A stretch of 64,000 bases of DNA from Anthoceros angustus (taxonomy: Eukaryota; Plantae; Anthocerotophyta). Position 1 is the stretch's first letter. Every line of letters starts with the position of its first letter. Under the pieces are notes generated by a model. It was given only the letters and a program-made list of their open reading frames with translations, had not been told where the DNA came from and searched no databases. Below are positions 6,957 to 44,866 of the stretch, piece after piece. The DNA lies in contig MU008177.1 of NCBI GenBank assembly GCA_010909165.1, positions 868,001 to 932,000 of the forward strand, read 5' to 3'. The position numbers and the translations under genes are program-made.

Positions 6957-8285
6957 TCAAATCCAGTCTCTCTCTTGCAACTTCATGGGCAAATAAACCT
7001 CCGACAAATATTGGAAACCGAAGGAACTCAACGCCTGGATCTCAGCCTTCTCCTTTGTCTTCACCATGAGTTCCAGCTCCCTCACCCAGTTGGGATCCTT
7101 CTTGATGAAATCCTCCTCGAGCAAATCCCTGCCCGTCTTCAAATCCTGATCAGTCATCGGCAACCTGCACTGCTCCGGAATCTTATACTTGTCCAAGTCC
7201 GAGGGACGGACTCCTAACCACTTGATATCCGGGGTAGTGAGGTTCGAGCTATCGTAAGACATGTTCTTGGAACCACTCATGTAGACCGAAAGGATCTTGA
7301 GACCGTAGGGGTCGCTATCCACCAACCCTAGGACAGGCAACTTCAATTCCGTCTTCAGCTTCTTCAAGAACAGCCTGGTAGCGACATCAGGCTGTCCCTT
7401 AGCAGTGATGATGACACAGGGAAAGCGGTTGTAAAATCTATCTTCCGCAAGCCTCATGAAAGCAGCATCCTTCTCCACCAGCAATATGAATAAAGCGTCG
7501 CTACGCATGTCCCCGACCTTGTCTATGTTCGGTGGGATAGCTTTCCCGCCAACTCCCATCTTGGTGCAATCAATGGTATCCCCATCCTCCACAAATATGA
7601 GCTTCCCTACAACCACCCCCTTCTCCGAGGCCACCACATTCAAACTCGATCTCGTGCATCCCAGCATGCAAGAAACGTCATCTAGCACACTGTCCGACTG
7701 CCCCTGCTCCTGGAACAGCTTCACATCCGTGTAGAACAGGTCACGCTTGGTGACATGGATCCGCTTCGTGCACAGCTGGTGCACAAGCTGCAGAATACGG
7801 GTCGTAATGGTAGTCCTCCTCACAGTCGAGATGTTGGCAAACTGGCGGAAGGATGACTTGTCCTTGAGCACTATCCGGTCCAGCTCAGGCACGTAAAGCT
7901 GATTCGCCCCGCTTCTGGCTGGCACGCTGAACCCGAAGCCCTTCCCGTGGATGATGGACTTGGCTACAGCAAGGAACTGCTTCTCGATTTCATGCACCAC
8001 ATTCTCATGGCTCAGATCGACCACCTCTCTGCAGGTGTGAGGCAGATTAAGATCTGCTAGAGAACGGGTGTCTGCCTTGGCACTCTTCACCGTCTGAGCC
8101 AAGGACTTGAGAGAATTGAGGATGTAATTATCCCCTTTCAGTTTGTTCCGGAACCCAAGAGCGTCCTGGCCCTGTGCCTTGGGTGCCACCTTTTCCCTCG
8201 CTGCCTTCTTCCGAGTCTGCGACGGCTGTTCCTCCAGCTCGTAGTCGCTGTCGGCGTCCGCTGCCCGCTTCCGCTTGGAAGCCAT
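6957..8285 (-). CDS. TOP6A: DNA topoisomerase VI subunit A (SPO11-3/RHL2/BIN5), single exon
   Basis: Uninterrupted ORF containing TKRDLFYTD (catalytic Tyr), [28 protein letters not shown] and C-terminal [15 protein letters not shown]. Confidence 0.97.
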
Positions 8286-8615
8286 AGTTGTAAGACGAGA
8301 GCAGAAACAATGGTGCTTCAAAAATGACCTAGAACAGTCGGTACATGTGCACAGATTCTAGGGTTAGGCTTATAAATACAGTCTACGCCGAGGCAACTCT
8401 CTTTTGATAGCGCCTAGAGCTTTTGCTCCCCCTCTGTGCTATTACATGTGCACAGATTCTAGGGTTAGGCTTATAAATACAGTCTACGCCGAGGCAACTC
8501 TCTTTTGATAGCGCCTAGAGCTTTTGCTCCCCCTCTGTGCTATTTAAGGGCCCTCGCGACGACCGGAGTTCCCTGGCTTGACGACCGCCGGCTTGTTTGC
8601 CACAGAGAGAGCAAG
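8286..8615. promoter_or_regulatory. Bidirectional promoter TOP6A/RPS15a with duplicated telo-box (TAGGGTT, 8359 and 8460) and TATA box (TATAAATA, 8371 and 8472)
   Basis: Divergent ATGs are 330 bp apart. Telo-boxes are typical of plant ribosomal-protein promoters. Confidence 0.7.
8343..8544. repeat. Perfect tandem duplication, 2 x 101 bp
   Basis: 8343-8443 is identical to 8444-8544 (ACATGTGCACAGATTCTAGGGTTAGGCTTATAAATACAG...CTCTGTGCTATT). Confidence 0.97.
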
Positions 8616-19286: not shown

Positions 19287-21690
19287 ATGCCAGCATACGC
19301 CGTGATTCTGGGCCCATGTTCCTGCGTCCCTGAATTGCGGTTGCGTCGCCCAGTACAGGACTCCCGTTTTCTCCGAAGCTGCAAGTTGGCCTGGGCTCCA
19401 ACCAGCATGGGTGATTACAGGGCCAAGAGGATTGAGCTGGGACGTGCCCATCGAAGTTCGACTGTGGGAATCGTTGCGGGAATTGGGAGGGATGGTCGTT
19501 TGCAGTCTCGCTTGGAGGCCAGAATTTGCAGAGTGGCGGTGATAGGGGCTGGCGCAGCTGGGCTGGTGGCAGCTCGGGAGCTTGCAAGAGAGGGGCATGA
19601 AGTTGTTGTGTACGAGCAAAGTGGGCTCGTGGGCGGAGTGTGGGTGTACGATCCCCGGGTTGAGGATGATTTACTGGGAACGAAACCAGATACAACGCGT
19701 GTGCACGGCAGCATGTATGAGTCTCTGCGAACGAATTTGCCTCGGGAGCTGATGGGATTTCTGGACTTCCCTTTTCTGCCCACGAAAGGGAGGGATCCGC
19801 GGCGATATCCAGGGCATGAGGAAGTGAGATTGTACTTGCAGGATTTTGCTGAGGAGTTTGGGGTTATGCGTTTGGTGAGATTCAACACCCAGGTTGAAGA
19901 TGTCAGTCCCGTGGTGAAGGATGTGGATGGAGGTGCCGGAAATGGATGCCGTGAAGATGCATCCCAAAAGATGTGGGATACTGCGGATAGGATACATGGG
20001 TCTGTCGTGGGTGACACGAGAGAGTTGGCAAGGCCGTTGTTTGAGCAGCCGATTGTTAATGGTGTGCAAGGTCTGGATTTGGGAGAAGTAGGACCTCAGG
20101 TGCCTGCTCAGTGGGTTGTGACGAGCCGGAGGGTAGTAGGGGAGAAGGCCGATGATGCTGCAGAAGAATTGTTCGATGCAGTTGTTGTTTGCAATGGCCA
20201 CTACTCGAAGCCCAAGATTGCTAGTATTCCTGGTACGTGGTGCTGTTGGTTCGTTGGTTTGCACAGGTTCTCTGCATTCAACTTGGGCAACAGGATGGAC
20301 ATGATGCCTGTTTGTACAGGGATTGAGAGCTGGCCTGGCACAGTTATGCACAGCCACAACTACCGTGTTCCAGCTCCATTCCGGGACCAGGTAGGTGTAG
20401 CGAAGTTGGGGTACCCTGCATGGGGGTGCTGCTGTGCTGTCATCTTGTAGAGCCCACTGCCAGATTGGTGTGACAATGATGTAGGTGTCTACCTTGTCGG
20501 TGCAGTGAAAGTTGCAGGGATATGTGTAGGTGGTGGTTCTTGTGGGCGCTGCAGCAAGTGGTGAGGACATCTCCAGAGAGGTAGCAACGGTGGCTAAGGA
20601 GGTGTACTTGTCTGCACGAGGCTGGAGCTCCTCTTTGGACCTTTCAAAGCCAGACAGTCGACAAGGAAATCTCTGGCGGCGTCCTTTGGTATGGCCCACC
20701 TTCCAGATCCATCGTTGAAGCAAATTTTCAGCAGAGAATGCTCTCATACTGCAAACAATCCGTTACGTGTCATCATCTCAGATAGAGTCCGTTTCAGCCG
20801 ATGGAGCTGTGAGATTCCAGGATGGGTCAACGGTTGTGGCAAACACGATAATGTTTTGCACTGGGTGAGTCCTCGGAGCCGAACTGAGACATGTTTCACT
20901 CCTTGTCTGCTTTCCAACTCATTCGGGTGTTGGAATCCATCCGAGCATTTGCTTGACACCTCAATGACTGGATGCTAAAACGCAGGTATGTTTACTCGTT
21001 TCCCTTCCTTCACTCACACGGATGTGTGTCAGTTGAGGAGAATCAAGTCGGTCCTCTGTACCAGCATGTGTTTCCTCCTGCTCTAGCACCAACTCTGTCC
21101 TTCGTTGGACTCCCATACAAGGTGAGACTGAAGGCTGTTATGGCACTGCTACATGGCTTTTTCTTGCCCTCTTTTGCAAAGATCCATTCACGGGGCTCTT
21201 TCCGCAGGTAGTTCCCTTCCCACTATGTGAGTTGCAGTCGAAATGGATCGCCAAGGTTCTATCTGGCAAGCTGTGTTTGCCATCCGCCCACCAGATGATG
21301 GCGGCAGTGCATAACTTCTATGCCTCCTTGAAAGCGCACGGCCTTCCCAAGCGCTATACACACAATGCGGACACGTATCAGGTCTGTCCTCTCCCCTCTC
21401 GCTTGTGAGCTGTGTCTGTATTTCTTTTCCTTGGGTGAAGCTGCGTCAAGCTAACCATGCCGTGTGCTGTGTTTCTGCTGGCCATCGCGAATCAGTTTGC
21501 CTATGTGTCTTGGCTTGCCGAGCAATGTGGGTGCGAGGTTGATTGGTGGAGACAAGAAATGTACTCCGCGAGCAGAGACAGCAAAAGGACACATCCTGCA
21601 ACGTATCGTGACGAATGGAACGACCACCACTTAATGAAGGCAGCATATGCAAGCTTAACCCTAAAACCGCCAATTCAAAGCGTAACCTAG
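19287..21690 (+). CDS. Flavin-containing monooxygenase (FMO GS-OX-like), with N-terminal transit-like extension
   Basis: VAVIGAGAAGL (FAD), SMYESLRTNLPRELMGF, RYPGHEEV, VVVCNGHY, WPGTVMHSHNYR (FMO identifying motif), VVLVGAAASGEDI (NADPH), FCTGY, YQHVFPPALAPTLSFVGLP. Confidence 0.93.
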
Positions 21691-31489: not shown

Positions 31490-32110
31490 CGGAGTAACCC
31501 CGTAGGCCACTAACAACTGACGGGCCTGTACATTGCAAAGACAAGGGCATGATGTTTATAAAAGGAGGCCCTTTGGACCGATTAGTGTTCGGATGGGGTG
31601 GTCCCATCCCTCAGCTTCGGACCGATTAGGAGGCTTTGATTAGGAGGCCCCAAAGGGCCATGAAGCTAAGATGGGTAGCGCCCCATCCAAGTACTGATTG
31701 GGTAGCACCCCATCCAGGTACTAATCGATCCGAAGCCTACAGGGCCATGAAGCTGGGGGATGGGTGGAGTAACCCCGTTTGCCAATAATAATTGCGGCCC
31801 TGCACAATGTACAGAGGAGCGCATGATCTTTATAACATGTGGATCCACATGATCTTTATAACATGTGGCCCTATGTGGCCATTAAGCTAGGGGATGGGTG
31901 GCACCACATCCAAGCACTGATCGGTCCGAAGGATGCATAATTAAGGAGTAACCCCATGGGCCGCTAACAACTGGTCGCCCCGCACTTCACAGAGATGAAG
32001 GTATGATGTTTTTAACCAATGACCCCCTACAGGACCATGAAACTCGGGGATGGGTAGAGTAACCCCATACGCCACTTACAATTGGCCGCCCCACACATTG
32101 CATATGGGGC
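31490..32110. repeat. Degenerate repeated modules (GGAGTAACCCC..GCC.CTAACAACTG, 4 copies) with GGATGGG..CCCATCC hairpin motifs
   Basis: Motif recurs near 31491, 31766, 31944 and 32057, with nested 26-27-bp local duplications. Confidence 0.7.
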
Positions 32111-32697
32111 CATGAAGCATAAGTGAGAGACCTAGCTATGGCTTTAAAGTGAACACATCGGGTGTTGGGCAATCCTCCATCTCAATGGATCTAATGTTAA
32201 TATAGCAAGTTGGATCATCGTGTCAATTCCTAGTAAATTGCAAAAGGAACCCACCGCAAGACCTCTTTCCAAGGTCTGCTTTATGTCCATTTACCTAGAG
32301 TTATGAACTATATCTTTCTTCTCCAAATGGGGATGAGATATTTGCATGTAACATAAAAGAGCCTTAGTTTAAGGTTGGAAGGATATATAATGGACGTTGG
32401 AAAAGGGCAGAGCATGCAATGGTGGGGTGGCTGGCCGGGGTCGCAGATGGTGGCTTTGGATTACCTCACTCAGGTGTTGTCTTTATTTGATCTTACCATG
32501 TTCCGCTGACAAACCCTGAACGCGAGTCCTCAAATGAGTAGGCCAGGCTATTGAGTAACTGAACTAGAGAGGCGCTTATAGGTTGGCTTAGGAGGAGCTC
32601 ATTAAAAATAACAAATATGTGCTCCTGTCCTTGTACTGTCTTGCATACAAATATGATCCTGCAACATATTTCCATGTCCAACATTGTAAAGAGAGAG

Positions 32698-33010
32698 CAT
32701 CTAACTTTTAGTCCAATCAATCATTGTCCTGCCACTTGCATGTATATTTGTGGTGAAGAGGAACTTAGAGAGAAACTACTTTCTAGATTACTTCACGGAG
32801 AATTCTTAACCCCAAAATGCTCAACCACCTCGAATTGAGACATTGAGGTATGTGTTTGTGTGTCACTTATGGGGCATCTAATTTTTAGTCCTGTCAATCA
32901 TTGTCCTGCCACTTGCATGTATATATTGTGGTCAAGAGGAACTTAGAGAGAAGCTACCTCTTCGATCACTTCATGGTGAATTCTTAACCCCAGAATGCTC
33001 GACCACGTCC
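32698..33010. repeat. Diverged direct repeat, 2 x about 135 bp (period about 178 bp)
   Basis: CATCTAA..TTTAGTCC..TCAATCATTGTCCTGCCACTTGCATGTATAT...GAATTCTTAACCCCA at about 32698 and about 32876. Confidence 0.85.
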
Positions 33011-33799
33011 TTGAATTAAGACTTTGAAGTACGTTTTCGAGCTCCCACAAAAACTTGTGACCTACATAAATAAAAAATGCAAGCTTCTTCCGCTTCTTGT
33101 TCTGCACCTATTGACCTATAAAGCAAAAACAACGGACCAACATAGCATCAAGAATGTCGATCTGAACGTCCATGCATCAAGAGTCAATTTCAAGGACTTG
33201 ATCACTAGAACCGTTTCCTCGAACGCAGAGGGAGAACGACATGCACTTCCCTCCTCTCTCTATGGTATATATCTGCTGGGGTGGAGCGGGTAGGCAAATT
33301 GATGGGTACCGAGTATGTAGACATCGAGCAGATTTTGGAGAATACTTAGTTCTAGGCAGGGGATTGTGTAGTGATAGGCATTGACTACTAGACAATTTTC
33401 TACAAAACTTTGCCGCAACCGTCCCAATTTCGTGTGGGAATTGCCGATCAGAATCTTGAACTCGATCGTAATTAGATTGTTTGCGATGATTTTCGGAGAG
33501 GATGCTCCCCTCAATTTGCTAACCAAAATGCCATGTTGATGCCACACACCTATTCAAAATTTGCTTCTACACAAACCACAATCTACATAGAATGGTGGTT
33601 CCCGTTATGAGATGACTTTCTGGTTGCATGAATCGAATGCAAGCAAAGCACACACCATTGGAAAGCGCGTGAGTGCATGAGGCCTACTTGATTTTTCCAT
33701 ATTCATTGAACACGAGATGTGAACAGGAAAAATGAAAGAGTTACGATAGTGAATTATTAAAAAAATAGGTCTGGAGAGCCCGGTGATTCAAGGGCTAAA

Positions 33800-35900
33800 A
33801 TAACTAATGCAAAAAGTATCGAAGGCCTTTGCTACTTTTCTTGATACAGCACAAAACATCAACAGGAGAAAATCTACAACATGAGAATAACTTTAGGCTT
33901 TCAAAGTATGTTATTTTCAACACTATTTTTTCTTGTAAAAACCCTTGGTTGAACTCTCGCCGTCACGGAGCATGTCAAGTTTTCTTGTTTTGGAGCTGTC
34001 AAGGCATGTAAATAATTAGGATGTATTTATGAAATGAAACTAAAGAGAAAGATATTATATGTACCTTCACTTAAAGATTGGGGGTAAATTTTTAAGATTT
34101 TTTGGCTTATGGGTAAGATCTTGTAAGGTGATTGATGTCATTTCATAAATACATTTTAAGCTTATCGTTTTTCTCATGGGGTTGATTGTTTTTTTGTACA
34201 CCTTTCCACAAAACCTGTTTACTATGGATTTTTGTAAATCAATTTTGAATTCTCGTGCGAGGAGTATCATTATTTCGAAAATGATTGTCAAACCGTTGCA
34301 AATAATCTCCTTATCCCTATGTACCCATAACTGGTATATTGTTGCAACTTCACTTTTCTTCTCCAACATATCGTATAGGTATGATAAAGCTGTAGTCTAT
34401 ACAAGAAAAAAATTTGATGGTATAATTTTGTATATTAATAATCAATTAATAACCAATTAAAATTGTTGATACATAGAGCAATAGAAATTGAAGAAACTTA
34501 CCAATGTGTCCACAAGTTTGTTGCACTTTCGTATCTTTATTTCCCACTTCGTTTCCATGTCTCTCATGTTTGTTACATGAGGAAGCATGCACAATTCGCA
34601 ATGGCACATAGCTTTTTTAATCTTAGGAATCAATTTTCGAAACCTTTGAGGACGACTGTAAGTGCAATGAGAGCGTTGTTTGCAGAATTTACCCTCCCGC
34701 ATATTGAGCCCACATGCATACTCCACACATACTATATTAATTAAAACATAAATAAACTCATCCTCCAAGTCTTCACTTCCAATTCCGTGGAATTTGTTTG
34801 GTTTCCCTTGACCACCATTATTTGATGTACGAATAAGTTTCAATAATTTACGTACTTGCTCAGCCTATGTACAAGTTTGACGAACAAAAATATATAAGAA
34901 CAAGTAATTCATTCATCATAACCCACTTCATTTGTTAACTTGCTAAACGGGTATGATGACTCACCAAATTCAATATGGCTTGTTTTTGTCCAAATTGTAC
35001 ATTTTCGTCACTCTCAACTTGTTGAAGGATCAAGTTTTGCAACATATTGATCAATTCTCCGAGGGTTGGAGCCATAGTATAAACTAGTTTGTTTCGTACG
35101 AGATACTTGACTCTAGGCAGATTTATTATTGATTTGCTCAGTGATGCGAAATCGAGTCCTAAATAATTTCTCCTACAAGGCCCACAAAGATAGGAACCTC
35201 TGAGAGAGATAGGTGAGACTTATTACTATACACGTATTAGGTTGGTCACTATGTCTTTTGTACTAGAGTTTGTCTCTCTTATATAGAGATCAACATTGTA
35301 TGTATTAGCAATTACTATATATAAGAACTTACAACCAGGAAGCAAGTTAGGTTAGTAACTATGTCTTTTATATTAGACCTTGTCTCATATATACAAAGAT
35401 TAGCAATTGCTTTATTTAGGGATTTGAGGTAACACAAATCACGGACTTTTTCTCAAATGATAACAGAAAGTTAGGTTGGTTCTATGTTTTTTACAGTAGG
35501 GGGACTAGGTTACATGACTAAGATGTCGTCTTTGTGGGTTGAATTAAAATTTGTTTTTCTCCTTTTAACACAAGAAGACCCAGGTCATGAAATGTAACAA
35601 GTTGAACCAAGGTTAAAAAGATGGAGAATAAGAGACAAGGATAAATCGTATTTGTGGCTCTCATTGTGTCGTAATTTTCTTCTTCTTGTTCAAGATTCTT
35701 ACGACATCTCTTTTTGTGACAGACAAGTCCATAGAACATGCCAGATGATTGTAGATTGGCATAACCTTGTCTCCACATGGACTAGGTACTTGTTTTAGCT
35801 GCCAAATGAAATTTGCCATTGGGTGTAGAACCCAAGTTTGAGCCGGCCTTCTATTAAAAAAAATAAAATTATATACTCGACAGAACATAAACAAAACATC
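33800..35900 (-). mobile_element. Highly decayed AT-rich retroelement remnant (possible gag fragment)
   Basis: The minus ORF at 34457-34843 contains KFHGIGSEDLEDEF..NIVC, loosely resembling the start of Ty3/Gypsy gag. A degenerate repeat of about 115 bp occurs at 35237-35500. Confidence 0.3.
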
Positions 35901-36102
35901 CCCTAGGCGAATTGTTGGTAGAATGTCACCAGCCATGTCTTCGGTAGAATGTCACCAGCCATGTCTTCTTCATGTCTTCGTCTTTTCATCATGAATAAAT
36001 GCGTCTCCGGTCCTTAGCCAAAGACTCCTAGTTAAAACCCTTTTTATATAGGGCATATAAGGCTTGGCAGAAGAATATGCCTAGGATGGCTGGATTCAAG
36101 CC

Positions 36103-36174
36103 AAACCCTAGACCTAATGACCTAATGACCTAATGGCCTAATGCCCTAATGCCCTAATGCCCTAATGCCCTAAT
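36103..36174. repeat. Telomere-like array: AAACCCTA followed by 8 x G(A/G/C)CCTAAT
   Basis: Units GACCTAAT x3, GGCCTAAT x1, GCCCTAAT x4 at 36111-36174. Confidence 0.95.
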
Positions 36175-36258
36175 TCGGGACGGGGGAACGGGTCCCGGAA
36201 TTGCAGACTACCAGCGGATGCAAAGGTCGGATTGGGGAGTGAGCTGCCATTGGATGGC

Positions 36259-38166
36259 ATGTTGCAGCGCCTCCTGCAGCGGTGTGGGGCGAGGACAAGT
36301 CGGGGCTTGAGCGCGCTCTCCGACGCGAGGGCAGCCGAGTGGCCTGCCAGTTGGGAGGACTGGAATCGGCTGTGCGATGGTGGACGCGTTGTGGAGGCGT
36401 TCCGGGCGCTGGAGGGCTTGGCTCGGCGAGGAAGCTCCGTGTCGGAGAACCACTTGCACCGCCTGCTGCAGGCATGCATGGCAAGCAGGGACCTGGCCAC
36501 CGGGAGGGAGGTTCACCGCCTGATTGTGCGGTGCGGGTTCGAGGCGCAATGCTTCCTGGGGAACCAGCTCATCCAGATGTACGCGTCTCACAACAGGTTG
36601 GCGGAGGCGAGTGGGGTGTTCAGCAGGCTGCCGGCCCCGAACCAGCATGTATGGTGTTCCATCATCCGGGCACATGCTGAGTCAGGGCAGCCTGAGCAGG
36701 CCATCAGGATGTACGAGAGGTTTAGGGCTTCGGGAGGGAGGGTGAACGAGTGGATCCTTGTGGCTGTCCTGAAGGCGTGTGCAGGGGCGCGCGATGTGAG
36801 GAAGGGGAGGTGGGTTCATGAGCACGCGGTGGCCGTGGGGTGTGTGGGGAGTCCGTTTGTGGGCAGTAGCCTCATCGACATGTATGCCAGGTGCGGGAGC
36901 TTGGAGGATGCGCAGGGTGTGTTTGAGGGGCTGTGTTCCGGGTCCAGCAGCGTGGTGCTGTGGACTGCGATGCTGGGAGGGTACGTTCGGCTGGGGTGTG
37001 GCCGGGAGGCTCTCGAGTTGTATGAGAAGATGGTGGGGAGGGGCATGGCGCGGGACCGTATTGTGATGGTGTGTTTGCTGAAGGCTTGTGGGGTTGCAGG
37101 AGCTGTGGAGCGAGGGGCGAGCTTGCACCAGGAGATCGTGGACATGGGGCTTGAGAGGAGTTCTCTGGTTGGGAATGCCCTTATCTACATGTATGCCAGC
37201 CTTGGGTTGCTGGACACTGCCCGGAGAGTGTTCAGCAAGGTGTTGAGAAGGAATTCGTTCACGTGGACGGCGTTGATGAATGGGTATGGGCAGTATGGAG
37301 ACCTGGCCGGGGCTGTACAGTGCTTCGAGCAGATGGGGAGGCACAGGGTGAAGCCGGATGCAACAACTTTCGCTTGTCTGCTTGCTGCATGCAGTCGAGC
37401 CGGTGCTGTGGATGACGGGGAGAAGTACTTCAAGATGATGGAAGCTGCAGAGTATGCGGTGGTACCTGCTGTGGAGCACTTGAACTGCATGTCCGATCTG
37501 TATGCCCAGGCAGGACGTCTAGATGATGCTGAGAAGTTGCTGCTGAAGGCTGGACCGCCGGAAGCTAACACCGTGGGCTGGAGGAGTCTGCTGTATGCTT
37601 GCTTCAGTCACAAGAATGTGGAGCTGGCAAGGAGATGCTTCGATCGTGTTTGTCATCCGGATCCTACCGACCCTGCACCATATGTCATCATGGCAAGTAC
37701 GTACGCCGATGCGGAGAGTTGGGCGGACGTGGACCACATCAAGCAGCTGCAGAAAGGCGCCGGTGCTGTAAGAAAACGTTCGAAGGCTGTGATCGAGGTC
37801 GCAAAGAAGGTGCATGAGTTCTCAGGGGACGACGACAACTGCTCTCCCATGGTTCATGCCAAGCTGCAGTCACTGAACGCACAGGCCCAGGAGAGGGTGG
37901 AAGAGGGATGTCTGTCGCAGTCACCTCTCGCATGGAAGCCACTGCAGGACGATGAGACGGAAGATGTGCTGTGTGGACACGCAGAGAAGCTGGCAATAGC
38001 CTTCGGGCTCCTCCACACCCTCGTGGGAGCACCTCTGCATGTCGTGAAGAATCTCCGTATGTGCAAGGACTGTCACAGGTTCTGTAGCATCATTTCCAGG
38101 ATGGAAAAGCGCAGGATCACAGTAAGGGATGACCATCGAGTGCATGTCTTCAGCCACGGGACATGA
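36259..38166 (+). CDS. PLS-class PPR protein with E1/E2 and a DYW:KP-type deaminase domain, C-terminally truncated; single exon
   Basis: Repeated P/L/S motifs (FVGSSLIDMYARCGSLEDA, VFTWTALMNGY-like), E domain GWRSLLYAC..NVELARRCF, KP-like box RKRSKAVIEV, HAEKLAIAFGL, KNLRMCKDCH; ends VHVFSHGT*. First ATG is 36259 (36232 is TTG). Confidence 0.95.
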   Translation: MLQRLLQRCGARTSRGLSALSDARAAEWPASWEDWNRLCDGGRVVEAFRALEGLARRGSSVSENHLHRLLQACMASRDLATGREVHRLIVRCGFEAQCFLGNQLIQMYASHNRLAEASGVFSRLPAPNQHVWCSIIRAHAESGQPEQAIRMYERFRASGGRVNEWILVAVLKACAGARDVRKGRWVHEHAVAVGCVGSPFVGSSLIDMYARCGSLEDAQGVFEGLCSGSSSVVLWTAMLGGYVRLGCGREALELYEKMVGRGMARDRIVMVCLLKACGVAGAVERGASLHQEIVDMGLERSSLVGNALIYMYASLGLLDTARRVFSKVLRRNSFTWTALMNGYGQYGDLAGAVQCFEQMGRHRVKPDATTFACLLAACSRAGAVDDGEKYFKMMEAAEYAVVPAVEHLNCMSDLYAQAGRLDDAEKLLLKAGPPEANTVGWRSLLYACFSHKNVELARRCFDRVCHPDPTDPAPYVIMASTYADAESWADVDHIKQLQKGAGAVRKRSKAVIEVAKKVHEFSGDDDNCSPMVHAKLQSLNAQAQERVEEGCLSQSPLAWKPLQDDETEDVLCGHAEKLAIAFGLLHTLVGAPLHVVKNLRMCKDCHRFCSIISRMEKRRITVRDDHRVHVFSHGT

Positions 38167-39580
38167 ACATGTGCTGTCAGTATCCTCCTGACGGACTCCA
38201 GGTATACACCTCCCACCCTGTCTCTCCACCAAACCAAAGAACTCCATCGGGTTGCCATCCGGGTACCCGCCATCCTGACTCTCTCTTCTGTCATGCAGGC
38301 AGGCATCCCAGCTCCTCCCCACCCTGCTCCCGCTCTCTCCCTCACAGACTTGAAAGGTCCACATCTCCACCCATACCCGTAACCTCTCTTGTCCTGGCCA
38401 GCCCCTCCACACACAAGCAGAGACAAAGGCACAACACACACAAGATCCACACACACACTCAAGCAGCACATGACAACCAGTTGGCCACGCCCCCCTTGTG
38501 CGCAGGTGGTAGGCCTGGCCAGGGCATCTGCCAGCTTCCCTGGCCTATGGGTGTGTGGAAGTGTGGCCGTTGTGACAGCATGGCAACAAGCGCTGGCTGC
38601 AGAGTGTACGTGGTGCATTCCACACCCCATCATCACAACGCCATATCTCCTGCCCTCACCACGGTGCGTTTTCCCCTCCCAGTCCCCTGCCCACACCAAT
38701 CTGCCATCTCTCTTTTGTACGAAACTGAACCCACAAACGGACGCAGCCACGAGCTTCACCATGCCACGGTCCTGCCCCTGTACTTCCCCCTCCCTCACCC
38801 GGATCACTCATCATTCCCACCGATCCCCCTCCAGGTACACCAGCAACCCGTCTCCCTCTTACAGGATACTGGCAGATTCTCCGTTCTCCAGAGACGCGTT
38901 CCGTGACGCCACCATACAATTGCAAAGCCGCAAGAGATGCTTCCGTTTCCTTGCTGACAGCAGCCGGGCCCCCGCAACGTGCCCGGAAATGAAAAGGCCG
39001 GCCCGCTACATCATCTGGTACTATTCCCGTCCTTCCATTACACAATCCTCCTCCATGTCCGGCAACTCCGGATTCCGGCGATCTCTACATCAAACCATGA
39101 AACCCCAGAAACCCCAGCCGGGCAGCCCTTAATTCAAACGGGAGCCCTAAACGTCCTCCCGCTCGGCCCTCCCGGGCCCACCACGGGGGCATATTTTGGG
39201 CGCACTGAGCACATGCGACGACCGCCGGGCAGTCGTGCAGCCCGGTCGGCGTCCGTCGCGTCCCGACGCCCTCCGGTCCCGGGGTCAAGCCCGAGTCTCC
39301 AGAAAGATTGAGGGCTGGTAATTCCGTTGCCCCACCGGGCCGGTTACCTAATCCCGGTTTATGGACCCGGCCGGATGAGCGACGTGGGCGGGCGGATTCG
39401 GAATCGGATAGGCCGATCGGCCGGGGACGGCGTTCAATGCCGTGGGCCCGATCTCGCTTCCGGCCTTCCTCGTCCCGGGCGCGGGGCATGGCTGCCGGTG
39501 CCTTGGGCCGGCCTCCAGAGCCACATTGACGAGCGCGCGGGACTGGAGCATGGAAGCAGGCTGCTGCGACCGACCTCGAT

Positions 39581-39608
39581 CCGACCCGACCCGACCCGAC
39601 CCGACCCG
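39581..39608. repeat. (CCGAC)n pentanucleotide microsatellite upstream of the SPRY gene
   Basis: Five and a half perfect copies. Confidence 0.9.
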
Positions 39609-39698
39609 CATTGCGAATTCGGGGCGGATTCCGAAGCTTCAGGGCGGCGGGGTGGGGAGGGCAATGTAGAGGGGCCGCGGGCGGTGCGGAGCTGGGGA

Positions 39699-41275
39699 AT
39701 GGCGGACTCCGGGAGCGGGATGGGCACGGTGAAGGTGGCGGCTGTGAGCACGGGCGCGGGGCTGGCGGCGGCGGTTCTGCTGCTCCTGGCCGTGTGCTGC
39801 GTGCGGCGGGGCGGAGGGCGGGACGAGGAGAGGAAGAGGATGCGGCTCGGCGGGAAGGGGCAGGAAGAGGCTGCCGGGGAGTCGTGGGAAGAGGACCTTG
39901 AGCAATTGGAGGGCTACGTATCCTGTCACCGCCTTCAGCTGGGGAACCATGCGGCGTATGTGGCGGAGGCGGTGGAGCACAGGTGGCCGGCCTTCGCGCT
40001 CGCGTTCTACGCGTCTCCGAGTGTGCCTGTGGCGTCGAGCCTGTGGCATATGTGTACTAAGTGTGCGTTGCATGATGGGTTCGAGCCGGAGATCACCTGG
40101 GACATGGGCGCCGGCGCGGACTACATGCAGCAGGTGCGCTTCAACCCCGGGCTGGCCTCGAAAAGGGACTGGTGTCTGCACCCCGTGCAGGCGTTGCAGG
40201 CGGCGCTGCCGCTGCCGGGGCCGGCGCTGGTTCCCTGCACCTTCCCGCAGGACGCGTATTTCGAGCTCACCGTGCTGGCGGAGGGGCCGAGTACCGGCCC
40301 GGGGCGGGCAGGGGCACGGCGTTGTGGGTCCTGCGGAGAATGAGTATGTGAAGCTGCTGCGAAGGTCGTCTTCCGACCTGCAGGTGGCTGGGGCCGGGGC
40401 CGGGGCCGGGGCCGTGCCGCAGGCCGGGGGTGGGAGTGCCAAGGGCTCGTTTGATCTCAGCACGTCCAAAAGGAGCGACTATGTGAAGTGTGGAGGGGAG
40501 GGTGTGGGTGTGGGGAGATCGGACGCGGATTTGCCCTCGTCCTGCTCGCTGGATTATGCTTTGCACGTTATTGCTGTCGGGCTCGGTGCGGCCAATGCGC
40601 CTCCCTTTCGGTTCCCCGGGACGGATCCTGGGTCTGTTGGGTATCACTCTGCGGATGGCGCCGTGTATTTGAATGGTGGGTTGTCTTGCTGTTGTTGCTC
40701 TTGTTCCTGATGGTGGGCTTTGGGTTTGCGAAGGGTTGGGGTTGTTGGGTTTTTTTGGGTTGCGTAGGGTTTGTGGTGATGGAGATGGTGGGTGTGTGGT
40801 GGCAGGGGCGCTGTTTGCGGAGGAGGGGAAGAAGGTGCAGGCCAAGAGGAGGATCTGGGGGGCGGTTACTAATACTGTAGGGTGTGGGTTCGATCCGAGG
40901 GTGAGGAAGGTGTATTTCACGCTCAACGGGGAGCTGGTGCACGAGGTTAGCTGTAAGACTGCGGAGTATGGAAGCCCACTGTTTCCCATTGTGGCTGCCA
41001 ACTACGATGTCACGGTCATGGTGAATTATGGGCAAGTCTCGTTCGAGTACATGCCTGCCAACGGCCTGAGGGCTGCGGATCCCAGCAGCAGGACGCCGCT
41101 CTCCAGGTCAGGGAAGGTGGGGGAGGATAGTGGGGATCTATTCTCCATGGGTAGAATAGATTCCCACTGGCTTTCGGAGCTGGAGTCCCCCAATTCTCCT
41201 GACCTCTCCCACCGGCATGTGCTCTCGGAGACGGAGTCTGATCTGTTCGAGATTGTGCTGGACGGTCGAGGTTAG
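39699..41275 (+). CDS. Membrane-anchored SPRY-domain protein; 1-nt frameshift near 40280-40340 (pseudogene or assembly error)
   Basis: N-terminal TM helix; ALPLPGPAL..FPQDAYFELTVL in one frame; VIAVGL..PPFRFPGTDPGSVGYHS in the +1 frame; after an intron (about 40677-40805) TVGCGFDP..VYFTLNGEL, LFPIVAANYDVTVMVNYGQ and ESDLFEIVLD. Confidence 0.8.
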
Positions 41276-41878
41276 AGAGGGTTGTTGTTGATGTGTATAC
41301 ACGCAGTGGTTGCACTTGTACCATATGGGGAGGAGGAGGAGGTGAAAGGAAAGATCCCCGCCTCGGTGCAGAGGCGGGGTTAAAGACAGCCTTGGGCGCC
41401 GTCTGCCATTTGCAGCCGGTGGCATGTGGGCACATGCCGGCCGTGCAGAACCGTGACCCTCACCCAAAGTGACGCTGCAGGTGAATTGCACTACAGCATC
41501 AGCGTCCAGTCTGGCTATGGCGGGAGTGGAAAGTGCCTTTATTTTTGTCAGCCAGGGCCTCTGTGACATCACGCACCGGCCAAGAAAGGAAAAAGGGGTT
41601 CTGAGCAATTGTAGGCCATGCCTCTGCCAACCCCCTGGACCTGGTGTCTCATCACACGGTTTTCCAAAGTATTGCGTTGCAGGAGGATGTTTCCTGTCGC
41701 CAATCATATGGCCTGACGTTCAATGTCTATGACTAGGCCGGTCCTCGCAGAAAGGAGGTCTGCAGCCTTGTATCCTTGGAAATTGTGATGGAAAGAATTT
41801 TTCAATCATGGGCATTGGGACTGCTCTCTTGAGAATCTTGAGCAGCAGAGAAAAAATTAGGATGCGCTTTGCTCTACG

Positions 41879-44866
41879 CTACATTCCATCCTCTTCTTCA
41901 ACCTGCTTAGGCTTGCCCAGACTGCTAGGCAAAAGGGGCTCGAAGGTCCAGATTGCAGTGGCCAATGCCACCAAGCCCAGATTGAAAAACACGAATTGAC
42001 TCCCTGGACACAAAAGCACGTCCACCCCATAATGTCACATGGCTTCCGACCCCCCAGTAGATCCTGCAATAGCGCCTACCGATCATACCTGGTAGAAACT
42101 GCGAATGCCGACTTTGAGACCAGGAAAAACTGCATGGAGAAACCGCAAAATCAGTGGATTTCCACCAAAGCTTCTGGAACTTACACCTGTAGGCATGATG
42201 GCTACTCACATTGCACCTCCACTGCCAGGCCCTACGGCCTTGAAGAGAGAAACAATGCTGACGGAAAGCCCGTTTGCCGCTCCCCGTCGGCTTGCTGTCT
42301 GCGAAATGTCCATGAGGTGGGCAGTGTGAGAAGACTACATCTTCGGATAATCTTCCGGCAAAGACTATATGTACAGGTGGAGAGACTGACCACAGAATTG
42401 TTGATAAGGAGAAAGGCTCCATTGAGAGTGGCAACCTGCAAAAGCGCCAATCATTTCGAAGCCCCAGCACTTTTTCTCCCTCCCTTTGTTCTTTCTACAC
42501 TTCAGAATCTGGGAGGGTGCTCACCGAAAACATGCACTTGAGGACCGTGGCTATCACAACCAATCCCTTCAGAAGAACCCCGTTGAAGTTAGAAAACCAC
42601 GGGTAGGCAGCTAGCACAGGCAGGGCGAGGATCTGCAGCCGGGGGAACGATAGCCCGCTTGAGCAGCAGTTTCACAGTTATGGAAGTGATCGTTTGTTCA
42701 GCAATGCACCAGGGCCATGATCACCTACTGCACAGATGCGTGTGACTTTGATGGGTCCCAGTCTGTTTGCAATGGGTGGAAAGAGCAGAAGTTGGAACAC
42801 CAGCAAGATCAAACCTTGAGCCCACAAGCGCACCCTTCAGTGTTTGACCAGACTTCCGACAAGTGGCACACGGGTGCGGCTTAGCTACCTGAGGACGAAA
42901 GAGCATTGCCGACATCTGTTGTGGTTAAGCCCAGCCCTCCATATGCTCTCGGGCTTACACAGTATAAGGAGAAAATCTGCAAAACAAGCAGGCTCTATTA
43001 GGCTTTCACCAGATGGGGAGAAGGGTCTGGTGTCCAGAATCATGCAGATGCAAAGGAGAAGCAGCTCCAAGGTACCTCAGTGAAAGCCATGTCGTGCAGG
43101 GACCAGAGGCAATACAGTGTTATAGCTGACATCAAGGGCCAGTTCGTCAGCAGTGAGATGAGAGAATTTGTGTCTTCTGATGTCTGTGCTTCGTGGGCAG
43201 CCGGCTCCTCTGCCACTCCTTGGGGCTTGTGATGCATGCTTGCCTGACCTTTATCATCCTTGTGCACATGAATGGTCTCCTGACGTTTGGCATTATCAAT
43301 TGTCAGCAACGAGGAGGAGCAGGATTTGGAGCATACTAGTATTTTCCCTCTGCATTCTGGATCTTGTTAGAAGAGGGCCCAGAAAAAGAGAGAACCTACA
43401 GGCAGATGGAAGGCAATGCACATGCCCACGAAACAGGCAGCTGAACACACAACCGCGGGCAATAAGTACGGGTACCTGCAATTGCGAAAATTGGCAGTCT
43501 TTAGAGAGGCAGATTCGAAGTGTCTGTTCTAGAACCGGAAGGATTTGAGTAAGACCAAACCTACTCAGCAAAGAGCGAGCCATCGGGGAACAGGCTGGGA
43601 TACTTCTGAGCTGGCTGCAGTGCACGACCAGACCTCAGCTCGTCAATCGTACCAGTGAGTATACGACAATGCATCAGGCGATACACGTACAGACTGCCAC
43701 CACCCACCTGAGCCAGGTACCCTCCAATTGCCGGACCGATTATTAGACCAACGCCCCATGTGGTGCCCACCTGTGGGTTAGGACAAAATGGAGTGAGCCA
43801 TCTCCTACCCTTTCCTACCCCAGGACCTAAATGTTTGCACAGGTAGCAACTCACCACTGCCACAGCCAGTGCCTGAGCATCTTCACTACACAGCTCGGAC
43901 GCGTAAGCCTGTAGTCATCACTTTGCGACAACACAACACATCATCTGAATGTAGCTCTCAGGTTAATCACAACCACCCATTCACTTCTGAGAATGGGTGA
44001 ATCACCTTCACAGGTCCCAGCACCCCGTTGAAGCAGCCAAACAGAAATCGGGACGCCAGTGCCATCCAGAAACTTCTACTGACTCCGAAAATCAAGTTGA
44101 GCACCATCCTGCATTATTCCAAACAGAAACGATCAGCTCAAGAGCCCTGATGCCAAATGGTGATCTTGAGTTCCAAACGTGAGCACATGAGGCTGCCCAG
44201 GCCTCTTTGCGACAGGCCTGTGGAACACTCACCCGGAGAAGACACCTGCTATGATGATCGGCCGTCTCCCATACTTGTCAGCTAACTGTCCCCAGTGCAT
44301 GGCAGTCAGGCACCGACCAACCAGGAATGCCGAGCCTGCAAGACATGCACCGCAAGGTTCACAGACTCCGGGACCTGGCACCATAACAGCATCATACTGT
44401 ACAGCGTTCCGCAACACCGAGACCCACCAACGAAGCCAGCGTAAAAGCCTATATCCTCATCACGCTCTGCGATGTGAAAGTCTTGCACCTGAAAGATTTG
44501 CAAACCCAGGAATTTTAGAAAGTTGAAAGGACGTCTCCACGCTCGAATTGTCGAGAAAAGAGCGACAGGTGCGTACCATGAAATAAAGGAAGGGGTACAG
44601 AGAACATGTTGGCAACGCTGCATGCACAGGGCAGAGTAAAGTGTACGGTGAACCTCGAAAATTTCCCAGGCCTCAACAACTTGATCTAAGTGCAATTGAC
44701 ATGGAAGTACAAGCCCACCATTACAAATAACCACCACGGCCAAGGAGAATAACTTGGAGTAAGGTGGAGGAGCCCCCTCAGCCCGCAAGTGGGCACATTT
44801 GCATCCTGGACAGTTGGGATACACAGCCTTGCTTCTTTGCAGCAGCTGCTCATTCAGATTCTCCAT
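41879..44866 (-). CDS. ZIFL: Zinc-induced-facilitator-like MFS transporter, many exons
   Basis: CPGCK..LAVVVICNALPTCSLYPFL, EDIGFYAGFV, HWGQLADKYGRRPII, WGVGLIIGPAIGGYLAQPAQKYPSLF, NWPLMSAITLYCLWSLHDMAFTEIFSL, C-terminal GSQFVFFNLG. Confidence 0.93.

Follow-up and report, generated by a model that had tools for sequence, protein, structure and literature searches.

A divergent DYW:KP-type PPR gene of the hornwort Anthoceros angustus with its predicted catalytic centre kept and its DYW motif missing

What remains of an RNA-editing factor when its reading frame stops just ahead of the DYW motif with which its relatives end? The question is raised by a gene on the forward strand of a 64,000-nucleotide stretch of the Anthoceros angustus genome (assembly GCA_010909165.1, contig MU008177.1, positions 868,001 to 932,000; this whole stretch is called the window, and all positions below are counted within it). 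The gene encodes a PPR protein of the PLS class with a C-terminal deaminase domain of the DYW:KP type, and an initial annotation had proposed it as a candidate factor for reverse, U-to-C, editing of organellar RNA. The gene adds an atypical member to a known class and does not represent a new type of system. The domain has retained the whole catalytic centre predicted for its fold, and it lacks the last seven residues of the family, whereas the RNA-reading array that precedes it is conserved against a sister species.

The open reading frame (ORF) is the longest in the window and extends from an ATG at 36259 to a TGA at 38164-38166 (plus strand), encoding 635 amino acids in an intronless coding part. 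The initial annotation had placed it at exactly this position, and each of the strings that it quoted is present: MLQRLLQRCGARTSRGLSA at the N terminus, GWRSLL..ARRCF in the E1 motif, RKRSKAVIEV where a PG box would stand, HAE and KNLRMC. Pfam recognizes PPR (PF01535, E 1e-40) and PPR_2 (PF13041, E 6e-34) in the protein, and we segmented the motifs manually, checking the register against these two sets of hits. The first 31 residues (36259..36351), ahead of the first PPR motif, are rich in arginine and have their first acidic residue at D22, and they may serve as a putative organellar presequence; the initial annotation took the arginine-rich start as a hint of mitochondrial import. They are followed by an array of 12 motifs of 31-37 amino acids in the order (P)-L-S-P-L-S-P-L-S-P2-L2-S2 (36352..37569), and then by the E1 (TVGWRSLL...ARRCF...) and E2 motifs (37570..37770), where the Pfam E motif covers residues 451-503 with an E-value of 9e-9. 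Alternating P, L and S motifs that close with P2-L2-S2 and lead into E1 and E2 are the defining arrangement of the PLS class.

The remaining 131 residues (37771..38163) form the deaminase domain, as indicated by Pfam, profile scores, a tree, an alignment and a structural model. The Pfam DYW_deaminase profile (PF14432) matches residues 558-634 with an E-value of 1e-24 over its positions 9-85 of 93, and thus ends eight positions early because the ORF itself ends in HVFSHGT. The features of the DYW fold are present, namely a gating domain and the HxE...CxxC zinc-1 (Zn1) site with H70, E72, C98 and C101 in domain numbering.

To which of the two DYW classes does this domain belong? The published marks of the DYW:KP class are the KP box, alanine or cysteine within HxE, a variable terminal triplet, a methionine ahead of the zinc cysteine and Lys88, and two subgroups are described in hornworts, ending in DRH and in GRP (PMC11845758, PMC9478123). 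The query has HAE, with alanine in place of serine, and LRMC, with methionine ahead of the first zinc cysteine. Its box is degenerate: at 37771..37800 it reads RKRSKAVIEV where a relative (P0001) has KKPAKAVIEV, so that proline has become arginine and alanine has become serine. The diagnostic lysine is thus kept and the proline is not, no PG is present either, and the rest of the box agrees with the xKAVIEV of KP relatives. The domain also departs from the usual 132-133 residues and terminal triplet, having gained five residues internally and lost seven, including the triplet, at its end.

Phylogeny and profile scores place the query with KP over PG. In a tree of 59 DYW domains, obtained with a quick IQ-TREE search in which the query branch is long, the query falls within the hornwort-like KP clade with a Shimodaira-Hasegawa-like approximate likelihood-ratio test (SH-aLRT) value of 99, and it forms a trio, again with a value of 99, with two proteins that both end in GRP (P0012 and P0015). 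The query reaches 146.6 bits against a profile of 10 KP domains and 112.9 bits against one of 28 PG domains, 34 bits lower. This was the comparison on which the DYW:KP call of the initial annotation depended, and the call holds, since phylogeny, profile scores and the diagnostic residues HAE, LRMC, RDxHRVH and xKAVIEV all point to a domain of the DYW:KP class, within the hornwort-like clade and beside the GRP-ending proteins. A PG-type reading is ruled out by the tree and the profile scores.

Within that class the domain is a poor and unusually divergent member. Genuine KP proteins, each left out of its own profile, score 188-247 bits, so that the query lies 40-100 bits below them; its terminal branch in the 59-domain tree is 0.82 against a median of 0.19; and among the 60 columns with a conservation of 90% or more within the KP clade it is changed at 15, where members are changed at 1-12. 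The nearest domain that we found shares 55-57% identity with it. The same distance is seen along the whole chain, for which the closest database proteins reach 39-42% overall identity, and the PPR array has 39-42% identity to relatives that share 48-56% among themselves, so the protein as a whole represents a divergent lineage. The best database relatives carry KPAxAxIEV, HAE, LRMC and RDAHRVH and end in CSCGDRH, CSCGGRP or CSCRDHH. Three word searches, with the whole protein, its C-terminal 340 amino acids and the E1-E2-DYW part, gave best identities of 42%, 41% and 49% in a collection that holds neither the window's species nor its sister species, and a metagenome scan for related loci returned 38 pattern matches and no relatives among them.

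Against this background of divergence the catalytic core stands out. All 19 columns that are invariant over 30 PG and KP domains are kept, including H70, E72, the equivalent of Lys88, C98, C101 and both histidines of the second, structural zinc site (Zn2); had the core been decaying like the KP-specific columns, of which 25% are changed, so intact a set would be expected with a probability of about 0.004. The H-A-E at 37978..37986 supplies the Zn1 histidine and the catalytic glutamate, with alanine as in the KP class (PMC11845758). The lysine of VVKNLRMC at 38047..38049 (domain K93, an invariant column) is the counterpart of Lys88, which designer KP proteins require for U-to-C activity (PMC11845758). 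Following the KP-typical methionine, C-K-D-C-H at 38062..38076 holds the two Zn1 cysteines and the first Zn2 histidine, H102 (PMC7611903, PMC9478123), and the invariant H125 of H-V-F at 38143..38145 is kept as the second Zn2 ligand contributed by the deaminase body (PMC7611903, PMC10482289). The domain is thus a KP-type DYW deaminase fold with its whole predicted catalytic centre kept, as judged from the alignment and from a structural model.

What the domain lacks is precisely delimited. Behind HVFSHGT every relative continues with C-S/C-C-x and a three-residue tail, and here the TGA at 38164..38166 falls on the first cysteine of the CxC in the DYW motif, for which reason the protein has no DYW motif and retains only two of its four Zn2 ligands, the histidines; neither the CxC nor the terminal triplet is encoded. 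A TGT at 38170-38172 still occupies the position of the second cysteine, behind the stop. Such a loss is rare among related proteins: none of the 10 KP relatives departs from the terminal CxC, and of 291 fetched DYW proteins in which HxE...CxxCH is intact 288 have it, the other three resembling annotation artefacts. An assembly error at this codon can be discounted to the extent that the data allow a check, since the contigs of run X1 (organism A) have the same letters there, X1 possibly being the window's own source.

In structural terms, the domain matches OTP86 (7o4e) over residues 8-130 of 138 with an E-value of 6e-21 in phmmer, and it also matches 9kfx and 7w86. An AlphaFold2 (AF2) model of the domain has a predicted local distance difference test (pLDDT) value of 86 and template modelling (TM) scores of 0.72-0.80 to DYW structures (0.80 to 9kfx and 0.73 to 7o4f, with 7o4e and 7w86 matched as well; 9kfx and 7o4e/f are its best PDB matches), and is thus predicted to fold confidently without the tail. 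In OTP86 the last nine residues make up the DYW motif, of which C954 and C956 bind the structural Zn2 together with H924 and H947 (PMC7611903). In the moss PPR56, H123A/Y, C130A and C132A mutants no longer edit either target (PMC10482289), and mutations of the tail aspartate and tryptophan impair several PG enzymes, namely OTP86, DYW1 and PPR65 (PMC7611903, PMC9478123, PMC10482289).

Is a gene with such an end still under selection? Public contigs were aligned to 36150-38450, from run X1 (organism A), DNA run X20 and run X10 (both from organism B, the sister species) and run X24. The ortholog in the sister species, recovered from runs X10 and X20, has about 94% nucleotide identity. Its contigs align over 36223-38172 with a single indel inside the ORF, a 6-nt in-frame deletion at 37893, where the query has its extra residues relative to other KP domains. 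One indel in the 1905 nt of the ORF compares with four in the 260 nt behind the stop; had the ORF gained indels as fast as this downstream stretch, it should carry about 29 (P about 6e-12), and its last 855 nt should carry about 13 (P about 3e-5).

Substitutions tell a similar story for the array. Of 136 differing places 40 are listed; within 36267-37308 the listing has 37 differences to the sister species, and about 8 more in that range are unlisted. These 37 comprise 22 synonymous and 15 nonsynonymous changes (pS 0.088, pN 0.019), giving a ratio of nonsynonymous to synonymous divergence (dN/dS) of 0.21 over the first 350 codons; neutral evolution is rejected at P=4e-6, and a model with a single neutral lineage (omega 0.6) at P=0.0015. 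No listed difference touches the fifth or last residue of any PPR motif. By contig totals, divergence is about 4.3% in the first 1086 nt of the ORF, about 7.8% in its last 864 nt and about 10.6% downstream, so that the E/DYW part appears accelerated yet kept in frame. A pseudogene might show frameshifts and stops in its body and a dN/dS near 1; what is found here is a single stop, seven codons ahead of the family's usual end. With the array, the frame and the specificity residues conserved against the sister species, the gene would seem to be maintained.

Run X1 covers 36150-38450 entirely. It differs from the window by three substitutions, none in the last 1100 nt of the ORF and none at the stop, and by 1-nt losses at 36182, 36337, 36558, 36736, 36846, 37417 and 37846, with seven more in 38006-38450, mostly in G runs. 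The sister species agrees with the window at all seven losses listed by position. Homopolymer errors of this kind in one data set could mimic 'broken' PPR genes.

The sister species also provides a transcript and, with it, a history of the tail. A 2305-nt contig of run X10 joins 38201 directly to 38299, whereas DNA run X20 keeps the 97 nt in between; because 38202-38298 is removed in one and kept in the other, run X10 is taken to be RNA and the ortholog to be transcribed and spliced. The intron at 38202..38298, of GT..AG type with a pyrimidine tract and a CAG end, lies 35 nt behind the stop in the 3' untranslated region (UTR), and the transcript has a 5' UTR of at least 80 nt. Two indels mark the intron in the DNA of the sister species, an insertion of 4 nt and a deletion of 5 nt. 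Splicing around the stop is ruled out, the transcript being unbroken through 38172 and its sole intron starting at 38202. Nothing so far speaks for recoding of the UGA, as selenocysteine or by readthrough, or for editing of this nuclear mRNA, ideas that were not followed further. This 3' intron, the K-R in the box and the early end of the DYW domain are features beyond those described in the initial annotation.

Between the stop and the intron, comparison with the contigs of the sister species reveals what we read as a fossil of the DYW-motif coding sequence (38167..38201), now part of the 3' UTR. In the frame of the ORF, the transcript of the sister species continues after the stop position as T-C-S-C-Q-D-P-L..., whereas the window has T-C-A-V-S-I, through a 1-nt loss and two substitutions, so that a canonical G-x-C-S-C-x-D tail can still be recognized. 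The stop region itself, ACATGA-ACATGT, resembles a 6-nt tandem duplication. Four substitutions and two indels separate the window from the sister species over the 34 nt that follow the stop, which matches neutral DNA since the split; the truncation would therefore not be very recent, even though the array stayed constrained, and this argues that the tail has probably long been free of constraint in at least the window's lineage.

What, then, might the protein do? The reading that we tentatively favour, at slightly less than even confidence, is that of a maintained KP-class factor for site recognition that is itself catalytically impaired or relies on a partner for catalysis. The 12 PPR motifs together with E1 and E2 would be the RNA-reading part, the protein would act mainly as a site-recognition subunit, and a DYW domain could be supplied in trans, as for C-terminally truncated PPR proteins of the E+ or DYW-less kind. 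Truncated (E+) PLS proteins are reported to be enriched in hornworts (PMC13386178). For the P and S motifs, the fifth and last residues are N/S at -15, N/N at -13, C/N at -12, S/S at -10, T/D at -9, N/N at -7, T/D at -6 and N/N at -4. The target that the code predicts from these is about 5'-Y N Y N N R G N Y G N Y N N N followed by the edited base, a pattern of low information content. The protein would be expected to bind a single site in organellar RNA, some 4-15 nt ahead of a pyrimidine that is edited, which by analogy with the protein's class would most likely be a U-to-C site.

Several points weigh against such a role. The measured dN/dS rests on the 37 listed differences, with about 8 more in the same range unlisted, and the constraint may stem largely from the sister lineage, should that species lack the TGA. 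Divergence over the C-terminal 285 codons is about double that of the array, which could mean decay and not a new role. At the locus, run X24, which may be an RNA run of organism A, yielded paralog-conserved pieces only. Furthermore, we know of consequences of DYW-motif loss for PG-type enzymes only, not for KP-type ones.

The same observations can be read in other ways. The gene could be a young pseudogene, in which a nonsense change from TGY to TGA killed a canonical KP enzyme while the sister species keeps a working gene. The stop sits exactly on a cysteine codon position with the second cysteine codon still behind it, in the transcript of the sister species C-S-C-x-D follows that position in frame, the three tail differences that can be polarized (Ser/Ala, the 1-nt loss and Asp/Tyr) are all departures in the window's lineage, and the paralog-conserved pieces of run X24 fit as well. 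We nevertheless consider this unlikely: the pooled dN/dS of 0.21 is too low for one of the lineages to have been fully neutral, there is no frameshift and no other stop in 1905 nt, and changes behind the stop equal those of neutral DNA since the split, so that the stop would be old and the array is still intact.

At the other extreme stands the idea of the initial annotation, an autonomous U-to-C editing enzyme, whose KP domain would work without the DYW motif and the Zn2 cysteines, or with the two histidines and other ligands. Its premise of KP class has stood; its enzymatic step is weakened by the absence of the last seven residues, of both Zn2 cysteines and of the KP proline, and by the very long branch. 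An active enzyme would account for the preserved catalytic centre, Lys88 equivalent and 19 invariant columns, for the E/DYW frame kept between species (one in-frame indel against about 13 expected) and for the confident AF2 model without the tail (pLDDT 86), and KP tails are naturally variable, with GRP, DRH, DHH and DDT all on record (PMC11845758). It is hard to reconcile with a CxC found in all KP relatives and 99% of the fetched DYW domains, with the dead Zn2-ligand mutants of PPR56 and the impaired tail mutants, at D or W, of OTP86, DYW1 and PPR65 (PMC10482289, PMC7611903, PMC9478123), with a KP score 40-100 bits below real members and 15 of 60 conserved columns changed, or with a terminal branch of 0.82 against a median of 0.19, and on balance we regard it as improbable. 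More improbable still, and in our view very unlikely, is a role outside U-to-C editing, either as an RNA-binding PPR protein in the stabilization, processing or translation of transcripts, with the domain reduced to a structural part or pseudo-enzyme, or in C-to-U action. A conserved array beside an accelerated C-terminal part would suit it, and in designer KP proteins K88 substitutions and other small changes shift activity toward C-to-U (PMC11845758). All catalytic residues are kept, however, which a pure scaffold would not need, and nothing speaks positively for a non-editing function.

Comparison with known systems places the protein between established types. With the GRP subgroup of hornwort DYW:KP proteins, the basis of designer KP2 and KP3 (Gerke 2020, Gutmann 2020, Ichinose 2022, PMC9478123), it shares the PLS array, E1 and E2 and a KP-type domain, and also HAE, LRMC, RDxHRVH, a box ending in xKAVIEV and the lack of a lysine at the K103 position. 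Unlike that subgroup it has arginine for the KP proline, five extra residues in the region of the gating domain, no CxC and no terminal triplet, is changed at 15 of the 60 KP-conserved columns and reaches only 55-57% identity to the nearest domain. With the DYW:PG structures (OTP86 7o4e/7o4f, DYW1 7w86 and the synthetic PPR-DYW 9kfx) it has the fold and the Zn1 site in common, but it carries the KP diagnostic residues and has no equivalents of OTP86 C954 and C956 and no final D-x-W. The E+ or DYW-less PLS factors, such as CRR4, which works with DYW1, and CWM1, likewise combine a conserved RNA-reading array with an incomplete deaminase end, and one species has a truncated CWM1 where another has a complete one (PMC10482289). 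The query differs from these factors in losing the last seven residues only, with the catalytic centre intact.

PPR genes of this sort number hundreds to thousands in comparable genomes, and to our knowledge no KP-type system acting in trans has been shown experimentally. The gene described here amounts to a natural experiment, in that it combines an intact catalytic centre and a conserved RNA-reading array with the loss of the DYW motif, and it bears on whether the reverse reaction requires the structural zinc site and on trans-complementation among KP proteins. It is possible, if doubtful, that a KP factor has here been under purifying selection for long without the DYW motif and the two Zn2 cysteines, and U-to-C editing would then either need no Zn2, unlike C-to-U editing, or proceed in hornwort-type plants in a split editosome, with a DYW:KP domain provided in trans to truncated KP proteins. 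No target has yet been assigned to a native U-to-C editing factor, nor has activity been demonstrated for one (PMC11845758, PMC9478123), and any well-described native KP gene is for that reason a usable candidate.

A long single-exon ORF for a homologue of topoisomerase VI (Topo VI) subunit A/SPO11 lies at 6957-8321 on the minus strand (Toprim domain, E 2.5e-68), and another at 19287-20450 on the plus strand encodes the N-terminal part of a flavin monooxygenase (FMO)-like protein (E 2e-21). These neighbours are ordinary nuclear genes, and the PPR gene is a plant nuclear gene. Behind it, many overlapping ORFs of 240-340 amino acids occupy both strands of the GC-rich stretch at 38073-41001; the ORF of 338 amino acids at 39327-40343, unmatched in Pfam, includes a hydrophobic segment and could belong to a real gene.

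Base composition changes in a step just ahead of the gene, from an AT-rich upstream stretch at 32001-36000 (GC 0.34-0.42) to the GC-rich 36001-42000 (0.58-0.63) that holds it, and a perfect 26-bp tandem duplication lies at 35917-35968. Directly upstream of the ORF, an 8-bp tandem repeat, CCTAATGC, runs for 7.8 copies with 96% matches (36113-36174). The transcript contig of the sister species reaches about 36178, with an 11-nt gap at 36212-36222, and the repeat therefore lies at or just before the start of the 5' UTR.

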